NCBI GenBank assembly: GCA_002269645.1 | Contig: NIVC01003192.1 | Location: 1 to 64,000 of the forward strand | Reading direction: 5' to 3' | Origin: Macrostomum lignano | Lineage: Eukaryota | DNA: 64,000 bases | Shown here: positions 10,431 to 64,000 of the stretch, piece after piece | Position numbering within the stretch: the first letter of the stretch is position 1 | How the letters are laid out: every line of letters begins with the position of its first letter | The notes under the pieces: model-generated | Told to the model about the DNA's origin: nothing | Databases searched by the model: none | What the model saw: only the letters and a program-made list of their open reading frames with translations | Translations under genes and position numbers: made by a program

Positions 10431-28937
<18,507 letters not shown>

Positions 28938-36290: not shown

Positions 36291-39200
36291 GGCGGGCGCG
36301 GTGAGATCGATGTGGCCTGGGCACTATTTTAGGTGTAATGAAGGACCATGAAGGGATGGGGCAGTTGAATAGATTCCCATAATGCTTAATTAACCTAGCC
36401 CCGAATGGAGCCGAGATACCCAGCTTCGATCTCAACTGACTTGCGAATCTGACTGGCTGATCAATGCAAAGCGTGGCGGCTCTATCTTGATGATGCTGTC
36501 CAAACAAACCCTTCAAACTTGTCAGTCATTATTTGAGTATAATAGTAGTAGGCAGGGCTTGGCCTACAGATGAAACTGAAGCTGAGCTCAAGTTTCGATA
36601 TCAAATTTTTCCCTACACGATCGCTTCCACAAGTTGCGCTCGATCGCGCCCTTGTGTGTATATTATTATGTATATACGAGCTAGTTAATATTGTTATTTA
36701 AACTGATCGCGGCCGACTATTTTCAATCGAAAATCCAGCAAATTTTGATTGCAGATCTAGATCTCGTGTGCGCCTGTTTGTGTGCAGTGCCAATGATATA
36801 CACCAGCTATAAAAGTAGAATGGATCGTACAGCTGGTTCCCTCAAATTTTCAATGACGTCTCGTCCGTTGTCTTGATCGATAAAATCAATCTAGGGATGG
36901 GTCTGGGATCCATCTATATTGCAGTAATTAGTCTTAGTTATCTGAACAAGCAATCTGTGTCGTAATCATTGGTGTTGTTTTTGTTTTTGTTTTTCACGGA
37001 ACAAGTGGCTGCTGTATGCGTGTAACACTTTAGGTTTGTATGTACCTGTATTTTGAGTGGCCAAGGCGCGCCATTCAATTAGAATTGGAGTTGGCGCCAT
37101 TTATCTTGGAGTTCACGCCATTTCAATCAATGTGGATGGAAAAATCTGGGACAAAACTAGAGTCTACTTTTAGTAGTGTTTACGAAAGAGATGTCTTTAA
37201 AGAGCTTTTCATATTACCAATTCCAGAATCAGAATCGGTTTGGGTCTTCCAAGAAAAACAGCAGTATAACTGTTTAATTCTGTTGAATGTTTGACTGCCT
37301 TAACAACCTCACTTAGAACAATTTTTCACTTTTTTCTTGGCGATTGTCATTCAATAATAAAAACTTTATAGCACATATCTCCCTCTAGTTATGGAGACAA
37401 AAAGTTATACTTCACAAATTGGTTCTGGTTCTGGAACCAGAACAAGCAATATGAAAAGGCCCTAAAAATGTTAAGCTGCGCGGCAACTGTACGACTGTAT
37501 TACGCATTTTAATTCTGAAAGATGGATGCAAATGGAGGCGAAATCAGGATGGAGGGCCGTGTTATTACAGGTGTCATATTGAAAATTTTGGGGAGAGCCA
37601 GTCAAATTTTGGACAAAAATGCAAGCCCCCTCCTCAACATGTACAAGTATACGCTCGTATATGTATGGGACATGTATATGTAGACCCTACTGGGTCTGGA
37701 TGCACTCTTCACAGAACTATTAGCCGCGTGATTGTGTGCCCTGCACAACAGGTAAAGCAAGTCTTAAAGTGCATAAACTCCTAGAATTCTCTTCCCATCA
37801 GTCAAGTACATAGGCATTTTGATTAACCGTTTTTGCTTGCGTTAGAAAATTAAAATCCTTTCAATACACAGTCCGCTTATTTTTAAAGGCATAACAAACA
37901 AAATTGACTAGTTCCAATTATTTGCTAATTGAGCTTAAAAAATCAATTCTAGGGATACCCAAAATGTATAATTTTGAGTAGAGATAAAAACACTGAAACA
38001 TTTTACTTTTAAATATGCGTTTTAAGGTATGCATTTTAAATAAAAGTTCAGCAGGTCTAACTAGTATAACTAGTAACTACTAACTATTAACTAGCTCGTA
38101 ACTACTTACTTACCGAATTCACCCTGCATAAAAGCACCCCCCCAAAATATTGTAAAAAATCGATTGAAAAAGTATTTAAAATGTCAAAGTTAGTTGTAAG
38201 CATAGTAAATTGTTAAAGCTAAAGCGGTGTTGTTATATAATAGTTTAGTACTTACACTTTTGACTTTACAGTAAAGTACTAAATTAAATCAAGGATTTAA
38301 ATTTACTTAAGTCCTGCAATCAGAGCCTTAGGGATTAGGCCTAGCCCTTATGCAAGTTAGATAAAAAGAAGTGCATTTAAAGTCTATTAACATCCTTCGT
38401 AAATCACTAAAAGCACTAGATTTTGCACTGTATTGCATATTGTTGTGCAGGGCTACTCTGTCTGACTCTTAGTCTTAGTTCTATCTTAGTCTAATCTAAC
38501 TTGTCTAATTAATGATTAACACTAATGACTGTTGTGGTGCTACATTTTCTAATGCATTTTAAGCCATAGCCTAGCCTCCTAGCCTTAAAATAATATATAT
38601 TACCCTTTAAAGTAGGCCTAGTACTCAAAATTCAATTGAATGACTTAGGCCCCTAATAGAAAAAAATTAACCCCCTTTCTCATTCTTCTCAATTACAAAT
38701 TCTTAGCATTAATAATCTTAAATTGAAATTACTTAGAATTAAGTACAGGTAGAGATAGAAATTTAAATTTATATCATTGATTAAATTCAATCAAATAGAT
38801 TTTTTATATAAGTTGCTTAATTCAAGGTTTAATTTAATTTGTTAATTAAATTAAAACAAAAGAGGAAGGTTGTGAGTCTAAATTGGGTTAGTTTTAAATA
38901 ATAAAGACAAAGCTTTTGTTTTTATAAAAAATCAAACTGCTAGTTATTATATCTAAGACTTTGAATCAGTCTAAAATCATTATATAAGGCCAAAAGCTTT
39001 TTAATAGTTATCTATTTAAATAAACTTGAAAAGGAATGAAAGATTGATTCCTAATCCTGATCTAAAACCTAAAGTCTAAGAGTACAATACTATACTAAAC
39101 TTTAAGCTAGGCTATATTTGAAAAAAAGGTTTATATAGAAAATTATCCTAGATTTTTTGCTAAAAAAATAGAATACATATGATATGCACATACTCTATGA

Positions 39201-40108
39201 CTATGTATAAAAACCTAGATTATATCACTTATACAAGAGTAGATTTAAGGAGAAGGGCAAGACAATAGCAGCTATCCTATGTGGCTAACAATGATGATAC
39301 CCCTTTTCCTTTGGTTTAGCAGTTGCAAATGTCAATATTCTAAAATTTAATAATTTAAAATTAAATGGGCAGTGATCTTATGTATATTATAGTGCCTCTA
39401 CTCTTATTTTTATAATCTAACCTCCTCTTATTTTATATTTTTTAATCCTTCTTTGCATATATGACTATACTATACCAAAGGAATAATATAAAGCAATTAT
39501 TAAGTATGCTATAGCATGACCTATTAAAATATAAGCAACTTTTAAAGTTTAAGAAAAGCTTTTAAAGCAAACAAAATATTTGTATAGATAAGCATTATTA
39601 TTATTTATTAAAAAAATAGAATATATTTCTGTTTTTAATAATAGAATAATTTTAATATACAATTGATATAAGTTTTAAAATTGAAATATAGTATTTAATA
39701 TACAGATACAAAAATTAAAAAAATTAATAGATATATAGAATATAGATATAAATATTAATAGAATATATGCCAATGCAATTCTTCTAGATTTTAGAATAAG
39801 CCCTTGTTTATTTAGTTTATACTCTGTAAAAGCCAATGGTATTAAATTGAAACATACTTTCATTTGAGCTACATATAGTGTTTATAATACTAGACCCCAA
39901 TCTCAAAGCCAAATTTATATGCAAAGCTTACTGAATTTTATCTAATTGGTTCAATATAGTCTTCTATGAAAATATAGCATAATTGTATCTAGAGAGCCTT
40001 TGTATAGCAAAGCTGTATGTGTAGTTTAAATCTTTTGTCTTTGACTTAAATGTTTTTGTCCTATGTCACCCTCCATCCTAACAATTTTTGGGTGCTTGGC
40101 ATACATGT

Positions 40109-40260
40109 GCAACCTTGGGAATCACCCGGCCGTTTCTAATGGCAACACATACATGTAAGTTGCTATTGGCTGAGAGCAGTCCTGTGACTACTATTCCATC
40201 CAATAGCGACTTACATGTGTGTGTTGCCAATAGAAATGGCCGGGTGAATCCCTAGGTTGC
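40109..40260. repeat. Long inverted repeat / hairpin (61-bp arms, 30-nt loop); MITE or hairpin-RNA candidate
   Basis: Arms 40109-40169 and 40200-40260 are reverse complements with 6 differences. Confidence 0.85.
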
Positions 40261-40894
40261 GCCCAAGCATGGTGCTTGGTTGATCAGTTTTGAAAAATAT
40301 CATTACCTGCTTTGGCCATTTTATCATTTGGCTAGATTCACTAGATTGGCTAAGTGTTATGTATATATGCTATGCTATGATGTAGGGCTTGTTGAGTAAG
40401 TGGCCAATTTTCAATTGATATAAAGTTAACTATTATCTATATAATTGAGATAGAGTTTTCTAAGCAATAGAATTATAGTGGGTTGCCATTTGGTATTGTG
40501 GGTCCAAATCCAGAATCAGTCAAAAGAATTCAATATAAAATAAAACACCAAACACTGTATACCATATCATTTATATTGCTAAGCCTTTGACCCACAGAAT
40601 TTGTGTAAAAGTCTGCAGGCTCCATGTTTATAGCTTATTTAACTTTGACAGTTTGATATAAAAATCCTAAAGTTGCACGAATCTAAATAGTTATAAAATA
40701 ATTGATGCTAAATATGAAACACCTGTAGTTAATGTTGATGCCTGAACAAAAAGTGTGACAAAAAAGGCTTGAAGTTTTAGGCTTGTTTTCTTACTTGGAA
40801 CCTGTTGTTGTACTGATTTGTTTGAGCATTTGCCCTGTGCATTTGCAGCCAGAACTAGTGTCATTCAAGATCGCGTGCGTGACCTAGGCCAAAA

Positions 40895-41140
40895 ATGGCA
40901 AGCGCAGACTCGACTCAAGCTCAAGCTACTCAGCCGCAGTCCCGGCTGCTGCTTCCGGCTCGAAAGTCGCTGGACTTGTCGACATCTATGTCGGGCAAGT
41001 CGTCTGTTTCTGCGGTGTCGAATTCAGCTTCCGGTTCGGCTTCAGGCTTGTCCAACAGTCCGCGCGGTTCTTCATGCGCTGTTTGCCAGGATGTAGCCAG
41101 CGGTGTGCACTACGGTGTGCCCACTTGCGAAGGCTGCAAG
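40895..41140 (+). CDS. Nuclear receptor exon 1 (A/B region plus first zinc finger, P-box CEGCK)
   Basis: ATG in aaaaATGG context; C-x2-C-x13-C-x2-C; donor AAG|GTGCGG. Confidence 0.92.
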
Positions 41141-44100
41141 GTGCGGCAGATAGATCTACCATAATAGTTGTTGAATGGCAGATAGATCTATCATAGTAGT
41201 TGTTGAATGGCAGATAGATCTATCCTAGTAGCTGCTGAATGGCAGATAGATATATTCTAGTAGCTGTTGAATGACAGATCTACCCTAGTACCTATTGAAT
41301 GGCAGATAGATCTATCCTAGTAGCTGTTAATGGCAGATAGAACTACCTTGACTTAGCTGCAGGGGGCTCCGTGCGTCCGGAAACAGCGAGGAAGCGTTGC
41401 CGCCCATTTCGCTAACCCCTGGCGACCACGGGCAGCTGGTGCTGCGGTGTCGCGCAGGGAGTTCCGGTGGCGCCGGCGTCCGCAGCGCGGTCCCCCTCCG
41501 GAGAGTCCAGGAGGTGGATTGTCGCTCGCCCGGTAGCCCTTAGGTAGCGGACGAGCTGGCAGAGATTCTCGGGCCTGAAAACGTCGGAGAGGTCCGGGTT
41601 TGGGCCGAGGTAGGTGAGCCTGTCCTGAGTAAAGGCGGGGCATTCACAGATGAAGTGCTCCGCATTCTCGACACCGGAGAGGCAGAAAGGGCATTCCTCA
41701 CTGCGGATTTTCTCCTGGAGGTAACGATGCCTGGCAAAGCAGCCATGACCCGAGAGGGCCATGGTAACCGCCCTGATGTCCCTGCGGTTGAGTCCAAGCA
41801 GGGCCCTGCGTAGGGCGGAGGAGGGACAGGGGACAGCCGCGCGGGATTGCCGGCAGTCGGAGGCGTTAGCCCACCTCTCCCTGTGCTTAGAAGCCACCCA
41901 CTGGTTTAGAACTACCTTGGTAGCACAATGGGAAGCAGATAGATCTATCCTAGTAGCACAATGAGCAGCAGATAGATCTATCCTAGTAGCACAGTGAGCA
42001 GCAGATAGATCTATTCTAGTAGCACAGTGAGCAGCAGATAGATCTATTCTAGTAGCACAGTGAGCAGCAGATAGATCTATTCTAGTAGCACAGTGAGCAG
42101 CAGATAGATCTATTCTAGTAGCACAGTGAGCAGCAGATAGATCTATCTCAGCAGTACAGTGGGCACCCAATTGACAACTTATATGGCAGGTAGATAGATC
42201 TACCTGATTAAGCCAGGCGGATGATCTAAAAGTTTCGCTCTCTCCCATTCTCCAAGGGCTTTTTCCGCCGTATCGTGTCGTCCCGCAACCCGGCCGGCGC
42301 CTGCTCCCACGCCAGCCCGCTGGCGATAACGCCGCAGACTCGCAACGCCTGCCAATGGTGCCGTTTGAAAAAGTGCTGCGCCGTTAACATGGGCCGGCAG
42401 CGTTCGAAACTCGGCCGTCGGGCCAGACTCGACGCCGACAACGGCAACGGCGGTCGCGGAGTCGGCGGCGCCAAGCGTCGAACCCAGCAGCCGCCTTCGC
42501 CGAGCTCTGTAGAAGCTGAGACAATCAGCGATCAGCAACTGCTGCGCTTCATCGAGCTGAAACGGTGGGAATTTGAAAATCAAGTCCGTCGTCGCACCTA
42601 TTTTAGACGACAGGCCTCGCTAAATAGCGACAAATCGCCTGTCACCTCCTGTGCTCGGGTGCGTGGATAGTTTTCTTAACACGGCGGGGTTGGGGGCCTC
42701 AGAGGTTGAAGCTTTGGTTTGCGGCAGTGCCCAGAGCCCACTGAAAACCATCTGAATAAAAAAAGAGGGGGCTGAACTAGAGCCCAGTTTCCCGCTCTTC
42801 TCGTTCTCAGAAGTCATTCAAATTGTGCCAGTCAAAAGGTCACTGACAGTCAAACTGTGCCAGTCAAAAGTCACTGACAGTCAAACTGTGCCAGTCAAAA
42901 GTCACTGACAGTCAAATTGTGCCAGTCAAAAGTCACTGACAGTCAAATTGTGCCAGTCAAAAGTCACTGACAGTCAAATTGTGCCAGTCAAAAATCACTG
43001 ACAGTCAAACTGTGCCAGTCAAAAGGTCACTGACAGTCAAATTGTGCCAGTCAAAAGGTCACTGACAGTCAAAAAAAGTCGCGGACAGTCAAATTGTGCC
43101 AGTCAAAAGTCACTGACAGTCAAAAGTCACTGACAGTCAAACTGTGCCAGTCAAAAGTCACTGACAGTCAAAAGTCACTGACAGTCGAATTGTGCCAGTC
43201 AAAAGTCACTGACAGTCAAATTGAGCCAGTCAAAAAGTCACTGACAGTCAAACTGTGCCAGTCAAAAGTCACTGACAGTCAAACTGTGCCAGTCAAAAGT
43301 CACTGACAGCCAAACTGTGCCAGTCAAAAGTCACTGACAGTCAAATTGAGCCAGTCAAAAAGTCACTGACAGTCAAACTGTGCCAGTCAAAAGTCACTGA
43401 CAGTCAAACTGTGCCAGTCAAAAGTCACTGACAGTCAAATTGTGCCAGTCAAAAGTCGCTGACATTCACACTAAAAATCAGGGAAAAAAGCAGTATTTGA
43501 AGTACATCCTGTCCTATTAAACTCTGCAGACCAGCTCCTTGCCCCGACTTCTATCGAGTCCCGCCGCCACCGTCGCCACCTCACCGCCGCCGCCGCCACC
43601 GCCGTCGGCATCGTTTCCACCATCCGCACAATCCGTCCCGGTCACTCCGTCGGTCGCAGTCGTCGGCGCCCAGTCACCCTGGGCATCGAGCTCCGGTCGC
43701 TGCGGCAGCAGCAGTCGGAGCTCCCCGACTCCGCCGCCTCACCCGCCTCCTCCCCGCCGCCGCCGGACGGTCAGCTTAGCGAAGCCTGGCTAACCGGCTG
43801 TCAGCCGCTGCTATCGGGCCAGTCGCTTGTCCGCCTGTGCCACCGCCTGACTGGCGACACCGACAGTCGCTCGGCCGCGTGGCTTTGCTCACTCTGCGAT
43901 CGTCCGGACGTGTCCGGCGATTCGGCCAAGTTAATCCTGTGCGCGGTTGACAAATTTGTGCAGTACTGGGAGGCCGATTTAAACGATCAGTTCAGCCAGA
44001 ACCCTGTCTGCGGCCGGGCCATTGCCGAGAGCACGGAGCTCATTCTCGAGGGGCATCGGCGCACCGCCTACTTCTGTCAGGACCGGATGTCTAAGTTCAG

Positions 44101-45768
44101 GGCTGAGCGCTTGCCTATGGTGAGTGTGTTGCTATGGGGGTCTAACCTAGGGTTTTTCTCTACGATTTCTGTCCGGCATGAAAGATAGTCGATTTGGATG
44201 GCCGGTCTATCTGGATGGTCTATTTGGATGGCCGGTTTATCTGGATGGTCTATTTGGATGGCCGGTTTATCTGGATTGTCGATTTTGGCCGGTTTATCTG
44301 GGTGGCCGGTTTATCTGGATGGCCGGTTTATCTGGATGGTCGATTTGGATGGCCGGTTTATCTGGATGGTCTATTTGGATGGCCGGTTTATCTGGGTGGT
44401 CTATTTGGATGGCCGGTTTATCTGGGTGGTCTATTTGGATGGCCGGTTTATCTGGATGGTCTATTTGGATGGCCGGTTTATCTGGGTGGTCTATTTGGAT
44501 GGCCGGTTTATCTGGGTGGTCTATTTGGATGGCCGGTTTATCTGGGTGGTCTATTTGGATGGCCGGTTTATCTGGGTGGTCTATTTGGATGGCCGGTTTA
44601 TCTGGATGGTCGATTTGGATGGCCGGTTTATCTGGATGGTCTATTTGGATGGCCGGTTTATCTGGGTGGCCGGTTTATCTGGATGGTCGATTTTGGCCGG
44701 TTTATCTGGGTGGCCGGTTTATCTGGATGGCCGGTTTATCTGGATGGCCGGTTTATCTGGATGGCCGGTTTATCTGGGTGGTCGATTTGGATGGTAGATT
44801 AGGTTGTTTGATTTGTATATATTTTTTAATGTCACTGTAGTTAACTTTAGACTATCGGACTTGATGTTATTCTACGGTAGATATCTATTTCAAATTGGCT
44901 CTTAAAAGAAGGTTTATGTGACTATTTCACTTTAGAATTAAGAATATGTACTAGTACCGAATGTAACTCTTTAAGTGTCCCACTATGCGTTCACTCAGGA
45001 ATGCCACTCTCCAATTGTCACACTATGCGTTCACTCAGGAATTTCACTCCAATTGTCACACTATGCGTTCACTCAGGAATGTCACTCTCCAATTGTCACA
45101 CCATGCGTTCACTCAGGAATGCCACTCTCCAATTGTCACACTATGCGTTCACTCAGGAATGCCACTATCCTCGTGTGACTTTCTGTATGGGCACTCTGTA
45201 AGCCATAAAGCATGCTCCTTCTCACTCTGTGAAGCGCCTTCGTGATCATACTTATTAAGTATTTTATAATTTCAGCCCTGACCAAAGCTTGAAAAAGTAC
45301 ACTCATGAATTGCTGCACTTGATTCCAGTTACGCGAACCGGCTATCGGTGAAGAAGCCGCCGTGCTGAATCACCTGGTGGGCTGCATACCCCAGCTGATG
45401 CTCCGTATAGTGGCCTTCGCCAGGAACATTCTAGGCAGCAGCGCCGCCGCTCACGGTCATTCAGATCAGCAGCAACTCGACGACAGCGACCACAACCGAG
45501 TGCTGGCATCTCGCTGCTCCGACGTTCTACTTGACTCTGATAAGCGGCGCCTGATTGTGCACCACTGCTTCAAGGTCATTGCTATGCGCTTCTGCGACGC
45601 CTTGATCCAGTCTGGCGAAGGCTACATTATCGATCCTGCGCTGCACTATCGTTTGACTAAGTTTGTACTTGTTCCACTGTTTGAGGCTGGGGTAGACAGA
45701 TAGTTAGGTACTGAAGGCATGTAGATATTAGGATAACACTAAGAGCATGCAGGAGCACTAACGCTAAA

Positions 45769-45838
<70 letters not shown>

Positions 45839-47757
45839 GACAGACAGACAAGCAGACTAGGACGCTAAGGCTACAAAGACACTAAGGCTACAAAGATACT
45901 AAGGCTACAAAGACACTAAGGCTACAAAGACACTAAGCCTACAAAGACACTAAGCCTACAAAGACACTAAGGCTACAAAGACACTAAGCCTACAAAGACA
46001 CTAAGCCTACAAAGACACTAAACCTACAAAGACACTAAGCCTACAAAGACACTAAGGCTACAAAGACACTAAGGCTACAAAGACACTAAGCCTACAAAGA
46101 CACTAAGGCTACAAAGACACTAAGGCTACAAAGACACTAAGGCTACAAAGACACTAAGGCTACAAAGACACTAAGCCTACAAAGACACTAAGGCTACAAA
46201 GACACTAAGGCTACAAAGACACTAAGGCTACAAAGACACTAAGGCTACAAAGACACTAAGGCTACAAAGACACTAAGCCTACAAAGACACTAAGGCTACA
46301 AAGACACTAAGGCTACAAAGACACTAAGGCTACAAAGACACTAAGACTACAAAGAAAATAAGGCTACAAAGACACTAAGCGAGACAGACACTAAAGCAGA
46401 CAGCTGCAGACGCTCGCCCCAGATTTCAAATCCTGTACATAACCAATCTGCCCCTCCGCCATTCGCAGAGAGTTCCTCGTGACTGCCAACCATCCCATGC
46501 TGTCGCAGCTGTTTCTTAAATTCTTCGACGTCTCAACTGTTTGGGATTCGCACGGCATCACGGAGCAAGAGTTGGCCTTTCTGTCGGCCATCTGTCTCAC
46601 TTCGCCATGTTAGTGGCTTGCTAATTGTACTGCTGTGAATCTATTCTGTGAATGTCCCCAAAATTGAGATCGATACTTCACGATGTCTCGATAGGGATTC
46701 GGAAATCTGAATGTCTCAAAATGGGGATCTAAATACCAGATTATCCTAAAATGAGGATCTAGATGTCAGAATATCCCAAAATGAGGATCTAAATACCAGA
46801 ATATCCTAAAATGAAGATCTAGATATCAGAATATCCCAAAATGGGGATCTAAATACCAGAATATCTCAAAATGGGGATCTAAATACCATAATATCCCCAA
46901 GTGGGGATCTAGATATCAGAATATCTCAAAATGGGGATCTAAATACCATAATATCCCCAAGTGGGGATCTAGATATCAGAATATCTCAAAATGGGGATCT
47001 AAATACAATAATATCCCAAATGGGGATCTAGATATCAGAATATCTCAAAATGGGGATCTAAATACCATAATATCCCAAATGTGGATCTAGATATCAGAAT
47101 ATCCCAAATGGGGATCTAAATACCATAATATCCCAAATGGGGATCTAGATATCAGAATATCCCAAATGGGGATCTAAATACCATAATATCCCAAATGGGG
47201 ATCTAGATATCAGAATATCTCAAAACGGGGATCTAAATACCATAATATCCCAAATGTGGATCTAGATATCAGAATATCCCAAATGGGGATCTAAATACCA
47301 TAATATCCCCAAATGGGGATCTAGATATCAAAATATCCCAAATGGGGTTCTGGATATCAGAATATCCCAAGATAAAAAACCAGTTTAATTAATTCTTGTT
47401 ACGTATTTAATTTCAGTTTTGGACTCGAAAAATGATGCGTTTAGCAGTTCGTCAGAGACACAGTTTGATGACGCCAATGCTGTTGTAAGCGTTCACTCCG
47501 CTGTGATCGGACTGTTTTGGATCCACCTCCGATCGGCTGAGATGACGAGAAGAGGCTGCGATCCCGCTAAAGTCAAGTTGGATTCCCGGCTTAACTTGGA
47601 GCTGAGAGTGCAAGGTAGGCTTTTATTTTATTGATAGCTGCTCAGTATGGGACCTAAACTAGGATTCAAAATAATGGGACAGACAGATCAGACAGGCAGA
47701 TCAGACAGGCAGACAGACAGACAGACAGACGGACAGACAGACAGACAGAGGCAGATC

Positions 47758-47828
<71 letters not shown>

Positions 47829-47836
47829 GGCAGATC

Positions 47837-47881
<45 letters not shown>

Positions 47882-48462
47882 GGCAGACAGACAGACAGGC
47901 AGACAGACAGACAGAGGCAGATCAGACAGACATACAGACAGACAGACAGGCAGATCAGACAGACAGACAGGCAGATCAGACAGACAGGCAGGCAGATCAG
48001 ACAGACAGACAGGCAGGCAGATCAGACAGACAGACAGGCAGGCAGATCAGACAGGCAGACAGGCAGGCAGATCAGACAGGCAGACAGGCAGGCAGATTAG
48101 ACAGGCAGATTAGACAAACCAGACAGGCAGATCAGACAGACAGACAGGCAGATCAGACAGACAGACAGTCAGGCACTCACACCCTTATCCCCGCAGCGCT
48201 CAGCCGCATCATGGATCTGTCAGCAGTATTCGACGCATTGCAAAGCGTTGACGGTGTGCACAAGCAGAACGAGGCAATGATTGACAGCATCGTAGAGCGA
48301 CTGTCGGCCTCGTGTTCAACCTCCGGTCAGCCAGATGGCTTCCCAGATTTCAGCGCCGCCTTCAACCCTGTGGGCCATCCGGCACCAGATCCGCAGCGGT
48401 TGAACCAGTACGGGGCCGGCGTCTACCAGGAGGTGTTCGGCCCCGCAGCCAACTCTGGTTGA
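40895..48462 (+). CDS. Divergent nuclear hormone receptor, most similar in motif to NR1F (ROR/HR3); 7 coding exons
   Basis: Exons: 40895-41140, 42257-42658, 43535(or 43530)-44119, 45329-45660, 46469-46608, 47417-47614, 48197-48462. [25 protein letters not shown]|GFFRR...[14 protein letters not shown]-box SKLGRR; LBD motifs [29 protein letters not shown]-2-like VYQEVF (cf. ROR LYKELF). The exon 2/3 junction frame is ambiguous. Confidence 0.88.
41146..42150. repeat. 32/33-bp minisatellite with GATAGATCTAT core, split by the retrotransposon
   Basis: Left arm 41146-41340 (32-bp units), right arm 41920-42150 (33-bp units). Confidence 0.9.
41351..41906 (-). mobile_element. 5'-truncated non-LTR retrotransposon (C-terminal zinc-knuckle region; LOA/I/R1/Tad1-type) in nuclear receptor intron 1
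   Basis: Minus-strand ORF W...CRQSR...[20 protein letters not shown]...[21 protein letters not shown] (C-x2-C-x7-H-x4-C knuckle); flanked by the direct repeat TAGAACTACCTTG at 41338-41350 and 41907-41919. Confidence 0.85.
42257..42658 (+). CDS. Nuclear receptor exon 2 (second zinc finger, T-box, hinge)
   Basis: ctccaag|GGC TTT TTC CGC CGT (GFFRR); donor CGG|GTGCGT inferred. Confidence 0.88.
42820..43460. repeat. 31-bp minisatellite GTCAAAAGTCACTGACAGTCAAACTGTGCCA
   Basis: Direct observation. Confidence 0.95.
43535..44119 (+). CDS. Nuclear receptor exon 3 (hinge / LBD start)
   Basis: Frame open from 43535 to strong donor ATG|GTGAGT at 44120; many C/G-ending codons in this frame; start depends on which AG is used. 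Confidence 0.7.
44190..44800. repeat. 30-bp minisatellite GGATGGCCGGTTTATCTGG(A/G)TGGTCTATTT
   Basis: Direct observation. Confidence 0.95.
44981..45168. repeat. 40-bp minisatellite CACTATGCGTTCACTCAGGAATGCCACTCTCCAATTGTCA
   Basis: About 4.7 copies. Confidence 0.93.
45329..45660 (+). CDS. Nuclear receptor exon 4 (LBD helices 3-5)
   Basis: gattccag|TTA; [14 protein letters not shown]...[19 protein letters not shown]; donor AA|GTTTGT. Confidence 0.82.
45770..46380. repeat. (GACA)n followed by the 17-bp minisatellite GACACTAAGGCTACAAA
   Basis: Direct observation. Confidence 0.95.
46469..46608 (+). CDS. Nuclear receptor exon 5 (LBD helices 7-8)
   Basis: ttcgcag|A GAG; [18 protein letters not shown]; donor T|GTTAGT. 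Confidence 0.82.
46715..47370. repeat. ~30-bp minisatellite with alternating variants (60-bp higher-order unit)
   Basis: GGGGATCTAAATACCATAAT... alternates with GGGGATCTAGATATCAGAAT... Confidence 0.93.
47417..47614 (+). CDS. Nuclear receptor exon 6
   Basis: atttcag|TT, phase 1 to 1, donor G|GTAGGC. Confidence 0.78.
47678..48170. repeat. (GACA)n compound microsatellite with GCAGATCA interruptions
   Basis: Direct observation; explains the false N-terminus of ORF 47647..48462. Confidence 0.95.
48197..48462 (+). CDS. Nuclear receptor terminal exon 7 (helices 10-12)
   Basis: ccccgcag|CG; ALSRIMDL...[14 protein letters not shown]. Confidence 0.82.
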
Positions 48463-61470: not shown

Positions 61471-62678
61471 CTATTTGATACTGTGAGATAAAACTTCAAG
61501 CTGCATGTGCGGGTCCAAGTAGACTTCCCGCAACTGCCTGGACAGTGTGTTGTGCTCACACATCCACTCGCCAGAGCTGCGCCTGTACAGAAGCCGATTG
61601 TTGGCCAGGTCGCGGAAACGATAAAATGCAAAGGCCTGAAAGCAGCTGTCAACTTTCACTGGTGGCAGGTCAGCCGGTCCACGCATTATCGACGCGTAAT
61701 AGTCAACAGCTGGATAGCGGCTATCCTCGCCGAAATGCTTGTTGAGAAAGAAAGTCAAAGTGCAAGGGTCGAATAGGCGATGTTCGGGAACTTCGATGGT
61801 GTTGGCGCACAACTGTTGCAGCAGCGGCCGAGTCTTGAAATAGTAAAGACCCTGGCTAGCCGGTCGAGACTCCAGCGAGTCCAGGTGACATCCGGGTCAA
61901 TCACAAGCAGCAAGTCAGCCCAGCCAGCAAAGTGCCTGTACGCGTACTCCAGGTAGATATTCCTGAGCGCGGACATGACCAGGCCGCGGTCGATCTCCTC
62001 AGCTACGCTTCGATTCATGCTGGCCGAACCAGGCAGGTGAGCCCGGCCGCTGGAGTAGCGAATATCGAGCCGGCAGGGCTGACTGGCCTCGCTAGAGCAG
62101 CCCAGAAGCCGAAGGCCAAGGTCGCGCTGCGCCTCTCCGACAAGAAAGGCGCGGGTTCCGTCGACCGAGTCATTCTCGACAACCAAAAGCCTAGAGTCGT
62201 TGAATAGTCGTCGAAGACGGCGCAGATTGCCCAGACTTGACGGTAGGCCTTGAACGCCGTCTCGAATAGTGGCTGCCACCAGCAGACGTTGGCTGGCTAG
62301 CCAATCACGAGCGATACGCGAGCGCCATTTGGGCTGCCTCTCAGACTCAGTTTTAAGCTTCATCAGCGGTAGCAGCTGACCAGGTCTGTCAAATTTGTAC
62401 AGCGATTGTTCTACAGACAGCTTGACCTCAGCCAGCATATCTGAGAAGGTTGGCTCTGACAGCGCAGCGCTGGATAAAGAATTCGACACCTGCGATGCTT
62501 TTATCTTTAATGAGCTGTCGCCAGAGCCAATTTGCAGCCAGGTCTGCGCTTGCCGGAGCATCATCAGGGTGAGCAAGCAGCTGACTGTAAAGGACGCCAG
62601 AAGCTGCCGAGCAGCTAGCCTGTGCCACCATAGTCGACGACAGTGTGCGTACACACGGAGCGGGTGAACTCGGAGCAT
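61471..62678 (-). CDS. Intronless type II membrane glycosyltransferase, GT-A fold, CAP59/GT69-like; interrupted by a 1-bp frameshift near 61855
   Basis: Two overlapping ORFs (61755..62729 and 61471..61812) join into about 402 aa if one C is restored (GCC AGG GTC to GCC CAG GGT C). N-terminal TM (LLASFTVSCLLTLMML); motifs VENDSVDGT, SALRNIYL, DPD, CAN...FD, VDSCFQAFAFY, CEH. Confidence 0.72.
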
Positions 62679-64000
62679 TTTTAGCCAATTATATTGGCGA
62701 AATTGGGGTGTATTGATGAAATCAAGCAAATAAGAAAAACTATGAGTCTCTGGGCAGAAAAATTGCTATTGCTTCTACGGTTACTGAATTCCAAATCGCA
62801 TCACCTCTAGTATTTATTCGTCAGGATTTCCATCTTTACTCTCAACCCCATCCTTCCCCATCATCACCGCACTTGGCTTAATGCATGAATGCGTACAATT
62901 ACAGCAGGTAGAACCGTCCTATGCGTTCACCAAAATCATTCTGCGAATCCACGGCAATGAATAGGGAAGAGATTCTCACGCGCGACACACTCCCCACACC
63001 CTATATATATATATATAATTTAGCCAGCTACTAGTGAGAGTTACAGAGAAACTTGAGGTCGATTAACGCTGCTCCAAAATCGACAACAGCAAAAAGTTTT
63101 TTGACCATTCATTTGTTCAATAAATTAAGCTAGTGTACATAAGAACGCACTCATTTTATGGAAGTATAAAAAGGACATTTTGGTACTGTACCCAAAACCC
63201 GTTGGTTTTAAATCGACAAAAAGGACCCGTTGACCGTAGGGCAAGAAAAATAAAGAGAAAGATAAGTATTGTTTACTTATTTAATGTACTGACCAGCGGG
63301 CTGCTCAAGGATGCGTTATAATTGTTCAAATCCATAGGTAGAACGCTGCCATACGTACAGAAGCACGCACAAGCCTCTCTGCAAAAATTTAGCACATATA
63401 ACTCGAATAAGAGCAATCATTAGGATTAGGAATATATATATACGATTTTTGCGTCCTTGACTCCTTAACAACATGTTACATGTTCAAATCATATTTTGCG
63501 AAAGTAGAAAAAGTACATAAAGATGGTTTTTATTATCATAACAAGCTAGTCGATAAATCAGCAGGTCTACATAAAATAGCAAGGAACAGCAACAAAAATA
63601 GTGCAGAATGAATGTCTGAAAAAGAAAACTCAGCTGCAGTCGGCATGCAAATTGTTGAACAAAAGGCAGAGTATCGAACGAAAAATCAGAATCGAATGAA
63701 AACTTGTTTTTTTCGCAATATTGAATGAAACCAATTTTTTTAATAGATAGATAAAAGCCTTGTGTACTAACCCAGAGCGAACAGGAGTACTCAGAAGTTC
63801 GTGCACAGTGCCCTTAAGCTAGCTATTGAGATGTGATAAGAAGGCAAAGTAAAAATTTCCGTTTGCAACATAAACTGAATAATTTTGAGCGAAGTTACTC
63901 CAGAGAATAAAAAAACTGCTTATGAAGCTTTCTGTATCGAAAAATAAATACAAACAGTGCAAGATACGGGCATGAGCTCAGCAGAGAGAAGCATACCATG

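Follow-up and report, generated by a model that had tools for sequence, protein, structure and literature searches.

A candidate Cys-His-Cys-Cys second zinc finger in a family of nuclear receptors from Macrostomum lignano

The stretch of DNA considered here, called the window, covers the opening 64 kb (64,000 nucleotides) of contig NIVC01003192.1 in the Macrostomum lignano assembly GCA_002269645.1 (Mlig_3_7). A six-frame motif scan of the whole window found a single DNA-binding domain (DBD) of the nuclear receptor (NR) type, which belongs to the gene BOX15_Mlig030638g2. The pattern of eight zinc-binding cysteines in this domain has been treated as a defining invariant of the NRs, and the receptor described here carries seven of them. 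The absence of the eighth, the second Cys of zinc finger II, is real, lies where the original prediction had placed it, and is rare. The reading preferred here, with a probability of roughly 0.6, is that finger II forms a Cys-His-Cys-Cys site within a conserved family of NR1-type variants. The sequence of the family, its conservation, the purifying selection on it and the modelled folds of its two domains are established, while its zinc ligands, its DNA target and its binding as a monomer are inferred.

A second zinc finger with a missing cysteine

The finger occupies positions 42302-42361 of the forward strand, which read TGC TCC CAC GCC AGC CCG CTG GCG ATA ACG CCG CAG ACT CGC AAC GCC TGC CAA TGG TGC. 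That the domain as a whole is an NR DBD is evident from its match to Pfam zf-C4 (PF00105), which scores 79.6-81.1 bits against a cut-off of 21.1, and from the 88 solved NR DBDs that match it at E <= 0.001 in a phmmer search of the PDB, the best at about 6e-20. Direct reading and alignment both bear out the earlier description of a non-canonical finger II in which the spacing is canonical, Leu stands at the second Cys and a His lies two residues after the first Cys. Leu104 falls in the second-Cys column in the phmmer alignments to the solved DBDs of ROR-gamma and RAR-alpha, and in the same column when the domain is aligned with 14 canonical M. lignano NR DBDs, and the distance from the first to the third Cys is the canonical 15 residues. 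Finger I, the P-box and the RNxC motif are intact, as had also been claimed, and so is the C-terminal extension. Further conserved positions are altered, namely the aromatic residue before the first finger II Cys, KCL (here KCC) and GM (here NM). In a survey of fetched relatives, all eight Cys were found in 227 of 267 DBD matches, and the exceptions outside the family were fragments, two sequences with an N-terminally shifted first ligand, and two clusters that lack the second Cys.

The gene Mlig030638 exists in three copies, g1 (NIVC01001076.1; PAA72595.1, 723 amino acids), g2 (the copy in the window) and g3 (NIVC01000452.1; PAA82786.1, 739 amino acids, partial). The first nine codons of the finger, TGC TCC CAC GCC AGC CCG CTG GCG ATA, are identical in all three, and g3 is set apart from g1 and g2 by a synonymous GGC to GGT change three codons upstream of the first finger II Cys. 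The same finger II residues appear in gene models from the older ML2 assembly (P0001, P0009 and P0011). At the locus of a paralogue, type 3 of the family described below (NIVC01000105.1), the corresponding codon is ATA (Ile), within TGC GGC CAC ATC ATT CCT ATA GAG ATG; no single-base slip converts it into TGC.

A family of paralogues and its conservation

Four DBD types of this kind in M. lignano are printed in the S5 File of PMC8363021, and type 1 is identical to the window. The finger II of type 2 is also without the second Cys, and the two remaining types read GSCGHIIPIEMTPQTRNTCQWC and GACAHSVPLEMTPQTRNTCQWC at finger II; one paralogue finger reads CAHSV-PLEMT. The second Cys is thus absent from all four types (4/4), and C-x-H and Pro-[Leu/Ile] are invariant among them while the positions between vary.

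Types 2 and 4 were compared as proteins, and the comparison at the DNA level was that of type 1 with type 3. Over the DBD and its extension these two are 83.5% identical, with a proportion of synonymous differences (pS) of 0.67, a non-synonymous distance (dN) of 0.10 and a ratio of non-synonymous to synonymous distance (dN/dS, or omega) of about 0.06. The ligand-binding domain is 40% identical (pS 0.72, dN 0.62, omega about 0.26) and the hinge 29% identical (pS 0.80, dN 1.07), with an omega that is not computable. The saturation of the synonymous sites between the types means that the duplication is old. Type 1 and type 3 have in common the position of the intron within the DBD, between K and G (K/G), as well as other intron positions; in type 3 the DBD intron is 9288 nt long and the hinge intron is missing, with one fused exon in the place of exons 2 and 3. 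Among g1, g2 and g3 the synonymous distance (dS) over the whole coding sequence is 0.011-0.023, with an omega of 0.16-0.33, and there are zero amino acid changes in the DBD.

The conservation of the DBD in spite of saturated dS, the shared introns and the absence of any DBD change among the copies show that purifying selection has preserved the unusual finger from a time that precedes the expansion of the family. Neutral evolution, which had been named as an outcome that would undo the prediction, is refuted for the family by the dN/dS of about 0.06 over the DBD with dS saturated.

The gene, its copies and a frameshift in g2

The locus of PAA52732.1, at 37895-46793 of NIVC01003192.1, is identical to window positions 37895-46793, so that the receptor gene in the window is the g2 copy, and the DNA of the window encodes the 303 amino acids of PAA52732.1 exactly. 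A seven-exon model on the window is confirmed by the g1 protein (P0015). The DBD is interrupted by an intron of 1116 nt (41141-42256) between CEGCK and GFFRR. The features of the gene, all on the forward (+) strand, are as follows.

40895-41140, +: exon 1, from the start codon through the N-terminal part and finger I (C61, C64, C78, C81) to CEGCK of the P-box; donor aag/GTGCGG
42257-42658, +: exon 2, with GFFRR, finger II, the C-terminal extension of the DBD and the start of the hinge
42302-42361, +: non-canonical finger II, C98 to C117, from translation and alignments; DNA the same in g1 and g3
42308-42310, +: His100 (CAC), two residues past the first finger II Cys; candidate replacement zinc ligand
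42320-42322, +: Leu104 (CTG), in the column of the canonical second finger II Cys
42392-42421, +: C-terminal extension of the DBD, containing SKLGRR, from sequence comparison
43530-44119, +: exon 3, with the hinge and the first helices of the ligand-binding domain; annotated start 43530, alternative acceptor giving 43535
43752-43755, +: run of 4 C; 5 C in g1 and g3
43791-43793, +: TAA, stop of the 303-amino-acid PAA52732.1 in the annotated frame
45329-45660, +: exon 4, ligand-binding-domain core (IVAFARNI..., MRFC...), intact in the window
46469-46608, +: exon 5, ligand-binding domain
47417-47614, +: exon 6, ligand-binding domain
48197-48462, +: exon 7, with the last part of the ligand-binding domain and the stop codon; paralogue-conserved stretch at 48271-48303, YQEVF at 48424-48438

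The open reading frame (ORF) had been called complete, and this needs correction. At 43752-43755 the window shows four C in a row (CCCC) against the five (CCCCC) of g1 and g3, and when exon 3 begins at 43530, the acceptor used in g1 and g3, the frame is open for 87 codons and stops at the TAA at 43791-43793. The annotated product of 303 amino acids then consists of the DBD and part of the hinge, without the ligand-binding domain. Two candidate acceptor AGs lie 5 nt apart at window positions 43528-43534 (CTGCAG/ACCAG/CTC), and the candidate acceptor that starts the exon at 43535 leaves the frame open through the whole of exon 3 and gives an uninterrupted frame of 722 amino acids, which is the only way in which the full length is reached.

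It is quite plausible, if short of an even chance, that the duplicate g2 is decaying or has been functionally truncated, the 1-nt deletion in the hinge exon being real, and that the full receptor is supplied by g1 and g3. The truncated product could act as a competitor without a ligand-binding domain, or the copy could be turning into a pseudogene. The shorter run of C in g2 is what such a reading would begin from, and the 303-amino-acid product comes from an annotation in which the GenBank genes of M. lignano were built from transcripts based on RNA-seq (PMC5730564). The sequenced DV1 line carries extra, duplicated chromosomes (PMC5730564), and redundant copies of genes are therefore to be expected. 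Private changes are also most numerous in g2, with 8 that are non-synonymous and 7 synonymous; set against the neutral 3:1 expectation these give a one-sided binomial P of 0.057, which is not significant at 0.05. On the other side, the exons that follow exon 3 and encode the ligand-binding domain are all intact, with 98-100% identity to those of g1 and g3, the second acceptor 5 nt downstream restores the long frame, and a difference in homopolymer length among copies that are about 98% identical looks like a classic artefact of polishing a PacBio-based assembly. The C-run may be a real recent frameshift, a homopolymer artefact or a change rescued by the alternative acceptor. The matter concerns g2 alone and is compatible with the Cys-His-Cys-Cys reading of the finger.

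A candidate Cys-His-Cys-Cys zinc site

In the mechanism proposed for the family, the second Cys of finger II would have been replaced by a hydrophobic Leu or Ile in the common ancestor of the paralogues, with a His becoming established two positions beyond the first Cys. The zinc of finger II would be held by Cys98, His100, Cys114 and Cys117, the second ligand having moved from position +6 to position +2. The domain would still work as a DBD, with finger I and the EGCKG P-box predicted to read an AGGTCA-type half-site and the basic extension SKLGRR predicted to contact the flanking minor groove, giving monomeric binding of the kind seen in ROR, Rev-erb and E75. These receptors bind as monomers with contacts to the minor groove made by a basic extension. 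The former D-box would be an x-x-Pro-[Leu/Ile] loop that offers no canonical dimerization surface, and with the D-box turned into such a loop the canonical D-box contacts between dimers are unlikely.

The argument for His100 as a ligand comes from its position. Among 189 distinct canonical finger II sequences, 4 (2.1%) have His or Cys at +2, whereas all three of the lineages without the second Cys (3/3) carry one or the other there. These are the Macrostomum family, P0018 and P0022. P0018/P0190 (UniParc UPI00074D98E5) is a protein with five DBDs in which the fingers in question read CNHSSGLEITVKTRKKCIKC and CCHSSDIKLT... (CNHSSGL and CCHSSDI), and P0022 (RWS01804.1), from the mite Dinothrombium tinctorium, has several DBDs and reads CCCDGNSEIT.... 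The probability that three lineages would all have His or Cys at +2 by chance is about 1e-5, for a sample that was chosen with the family profile. The presence of His or Cys at +2 in all three lineages that lost the Cys favours the Cys98-His100-Cys114-Cys117 site. Two residues spaced i and i+2 along an extended strand can chelate one zinc, an arrangement with good precedent such as His94 and His96 of carbonic anhydrase II. In an AlphaFold2 model built from an alignment of 66 sequences the predicted local distance difference test (pLDDT) score of the DBD is 81-97, finger II included; a single-sequence AlphaFold2 model of the DBD, with a pLDDT of 57, was disregarded. The extra Cys of KKCC was considered as a fourth ligand and rejected, as its place about nine residues along helix 3 would be too distant from the site.

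If the three lineages are taken together, the family would represent a second, independent NR zinc module that is not of the C4 kind, and the migration from +6 to +2, which would leave the D-box free to turn into a hydrophobic Pro-[Leu/Ile] loop, would have occurred repeatedly (in Macrostomum, P0018 and P0022) as a general escape route of the NR fold. This broader proposal is tentative, and its chances are put a little below even.

Several observations weigh against the Cys-His-Cys-Cys site. The sample was picked by similarity to the family profile, which brings a slight bias towards His at +2. The canonical C4 finger of MLHR96-12 also has a His at +2 (CSHGDGNC), and a His there thus need not be a ligand. 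The lowest pLDDT of the DBD (81) is found in the block before finger II and at its start. AlphaFold2 works without zinc, and the alignment alone would lead it to a canonical fold. The changes at the aromatic position and from KCL to KCC and GM to NM suggest that the DBD may work differently overall. Finally, when 1.84 billion representatives were searched with a profile, the family turned up in M. lignano only, and with no orthologue found in another species the conservation rests on the paralogues of one species.

Some of the same observations would also fit a finger II that has gone without full zinc coordination, having three Cys and a water or no metal at all, with the Pro-[Leu/Ile] loop providing the stabilization. 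In such a receptor the His would be conserved for a contact with phosphate or with a partner, and DNA would be recognized by finger I and the extension. It is consistent with zinc loss that the Cys was replaced by a hydrophobic residue instead of a ligand, that Pro-[Leu/Ile] is invariant, that several other conserved positions in the core of finger II have changed as well, that the pLDDT dips to 81 where the finger starts, and that the normal C4 finger of MLHR96-12 has the same His. Zinc loss is nonetheless considered unlikely, without being negligible, as the paralogues, in spite of saturated synonymous sites, have all kept the His and the other three Cys, His or Cys stands at +2 in two further lineages without the second Cys against the background of 2.1%, and structural zinc sites with three protein ligands are unusual. 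The Cys-His-Cys-Cys site is accordingly the reading kept here for the finger.

The ligand-binding domain

The C-terminal half of the receptor is not recognized by the usual profiles. PF00104 gave no match at E <= 10 for the model from the window, nor at E <= 0.01 for P0015 and P0016, and phmmer against the PDB found no match for this half. It is 57-58% identical to that of the type 2 paralogue, and a family hidden Markov model (HMM) of the ligand-binding domain is collinear with the PF00104 regions of other NRs. In the AlphaFold2 model from the 66-sequence alignment the pLDDT is mostly 85-97 over residues 311-675. The Foldseek matches to the PDB listed at ranks 1-50 are all NRs, with TM scores of 0.6-0.76 and a probability of 1.0, and they include the ligand-binding domains of RORgt, Rev-erb-alpha, VDR and PPAR-gamma as well as multi-domain chains of LXR, PPAR and RAR on DNA. 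The identity with type 2, the family HMM and the predicted fold together identify the C-terminal half, as modelled, as an NR ligand-binding domain that is genuine though strongly diverged.

The motif YQEVF, which had been likened to an activation function 2 (AF-2) helix, fared less well, being absent from type 3 and lying in a tail with a pLDDT below 50, and P0014, the one type 2 sequence that covers this region, stops short of it. The last long predicted helix ends in a conserved stretch, at window positions 48271-48303, where the paralogues read VLMESQINRI and AMIESVIEKL, and this stretch appears to be the better candidate for helix 12 in the model.

Receptor identity and the question of error

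In the phmmer search of the PDB the DBD scored 74.8 bits with ROR-gamma, 74.5 with RAR-alpha, 72.5 with Rev-erb, 69 with TR and 66.2 with PPAR-delta, the last of these being below GCNF as well. Judged by these scores the DBD is generic NR1. Other NR DBDs of M. lignano are 41-52% identical to that of the window.

That the gene is a flatworm PPAR (NR1C) or a ROR is unsupported and, for the two taken together, rated very unlikely, though the evidence on ROR points both ways. The PPAR label was given by Cheng et al. 2021, as reported in the S5 File of PMC8363021, and comparison of sequences leaves it unsupported, since the PPAR-delta score lies below those of ROR, RAR, Rev-erb, TR and GCNF, the D-box of three residues that is typical of PPARs is absent, and Wu and LoVerde (PMC8363021), to whom M. 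lignano yielded no evidence of PPARs, reject the assignment. The same authors report that ROR is missing from flatworms. ROR-gamma is nominally the best solved DBD and the ligand-binding domains of RORgt dominate the Foldseek matches listed, but the lead over RAR-alpha is 0.3 bits only, RORgt is heavily over-represented in the PDB, and the ligand-binding domain goes undetected by PF00104 and by phmmer against the PDB. The framing of the original prediction in terms of ROR and its response element RORE is unsupported, given that narrow lead and the reported lack of ROR in flatworms (PMC8363021).

An error in the consensus or assembly, with TGC as the true codon and a normal C4 finger, can practically be discounted, for its sole point is the earlier remark that the move of one C separates CCG CTG GCG from CCG TGC GCG, and the caution that it had to be excluded is answered by the three identical copies at separately assembled loci, by the same residues in the gene models of the older ML2 assembly, by paralogues with Leu or Ile (ATA) at the site within a different flanking sequence, by the want of the Cys in 4/4 paralogue types, and by the fact that the PacBio-based Mlig_3_7 assembly was polished using Pilon with Illumina DNA and RNA reads (PMC5730564).

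Surrounding sequence

All the introns of the receptor gene consist largely of tandem-repeat arrays with periods of 4, 17, 30-31, 40 and 60-125, which produce long spurious ORFs in all frames. The intronic tandem arrays are located at the following positions of the window.

42818-43472: intronic tandem array
44184-44781: intronic tandem array
44959-45170: intronic tandem array
45769-46394: intronic tandem array
46719-47370: intronic tandem array
47678-48172: intronic tandem array

Intron 1 holds two related tandem arrays of 32-33 bp, at 41145-41345 and 41920-42165, both with GCAGATAGATCTAT. Between them, within 41412-42248, is a minus-strand ORF with a CPFC...H...C motif and no Pfam match, which may be the remnant of a mobile element.

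The neighbouring gene at about 12300-19050, on the minus strand, belongs to the TALE homeobox genes and is of Meis/homothorax type, with long CT-rich repeats in its introns. It matches Meis_PKNOX_N at E 4e-7 at about 18980-19049, and the homeodomain starts at about 13400-13540. Towards the other end of the window two adjoining long, non-repetitive ORFs on the minus strand, at 61755-62729 (324 amino acids) and 61471-61812 (113 amino acids), have no Pfam match and may represent exons from a gene that is lineage-specific or has escaped annotation.

Prior knowledge and significance

The genes themselves are already catalogued in GenBank, and their DBDs are in a published supplement (PMC8363021). 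The four DBD types were named NR1C (PPAR) by Cheng et al. 2021, according to the S5 File of Wu and LoVerde 2021 (PMC8363021), who left the four genes unnamed and outside their set of 61 M. lignano NRs; the omission was made perhaps for the reason that the finger looks broken. No mention of the missing Cys in the Macrostomum genes was found in a search of the literature that did not extend to Cheng et al. 2021, and no mention of Mlig030638 or Mlig004368 was found in papers. Wu and LoVerde stated that the NRs of other animals do not have the CHC2 finger of the parasitic HR96b receptors (PMC8363021).

That a clade keeps a different substitution pattern under strong purifying selection points to a wider tolerance of the NR fold. 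The family offers a natural test case for how the set of ligands around a zinc evolves, by migration of a ligand or by its loss, and in it the canonical D-box, the main dimerization surface of NRs on DNA, is removed. For annotation it means that screens requiring C4 and C4 fingers miss receptors of this kind. The practical impact is modest, the family being known from one species.

Comparison with known systems

The closest matches from outside, for the DBD with its extension (56-57% identity) and for the ligand-binding domain, belong to one conserved group of spiralian NR1 receptors. Its members carry inconsistent names at NCBI, such as 'E75-like' in Lingula (XP_013385069), 'NR1D1' or 'ROR-beta-like' in Mytilus and 'NR1D2-like' in Tubulanus, and they also include 'HR3' of Gigantopelta and 'nhr-48' of Octopus; the group may be the same as the molluscan NR1CDEF/MgNR1DEF group of Vogeler et al. 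2014 (PMC4070562). In common with the Macrostomum family it has [IM]TP..RN.C after the position of the second Cys, an S[KR]LGRR extension and the P-box CEGCKGFFRR. The spiralian group differs in keeping the second Cys (C-x-N-E-E-K-C) with an Asn at +2, where the Macrostomum family has His, and in a ligand-binding domain that is recognized by PF00104, unlike that of the family. Orthology with this group is not supported by the reciprocal test, in which the DBD core of the group came out closer to flatworm E78 and SmNR1 than to the family.

With ROR, Rev-erb and E75 the family has in common the EGCKG P-box and a basic extension with x-[FL]-G-R-x, and these receptors are among the top solved DBDs and ligand-binding-domain folds. 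The extension of the family is similar both to the SREASRLGRR of the spiralian group and to the stretch of Rev-erb and ROR that reads RFGR or KFGR. ROR, Rev-erb and E75 have a canonical C4 finger II, however, and in sequence the family is no closer to them than to RAR. PPAR, likewise an NR1 receptor, has kept all four finger II Cys, whereas in the family the spacing is canonical and the second Cys is lost. The PPAR D-box is short, at three residues, and the fold thus tolerates a shorter chelate loop.

The nearest parallel to the finger itself is provided by HR96b/VF1. The original prediction had pointed to His-substituted fingers in parasitic flatworm receptors of another subfamily, and these are indeed the HR96b/VF1 (Vitellogenic Factor 1) receptors, with C-x6-H-x9-C-x2-C. 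Both they and the Macrostomum family are flatworm NRs with a finger II that lacks the second Cys and has a His as its possible substitute, an arrangement kept throughout a clade, and the residues that follow the site are similar, HVITPTTRREC in HR96b and the [IM]TP..RN.C stretch in the family. HR96b is an NR1J receptor of parasites with extra exons inside the DBD and the P-box CESCKAFFRR, while the family is that of a free-living macrostomid and has CEGCKGFFRR. Above all, the His of HR96b occupies the position of the second Cys, whereas in the Macrostomum family that position is taken by Leu or Ile and the His lies four residues earlier, giving C-x-H-x13/14-C-x2-C.

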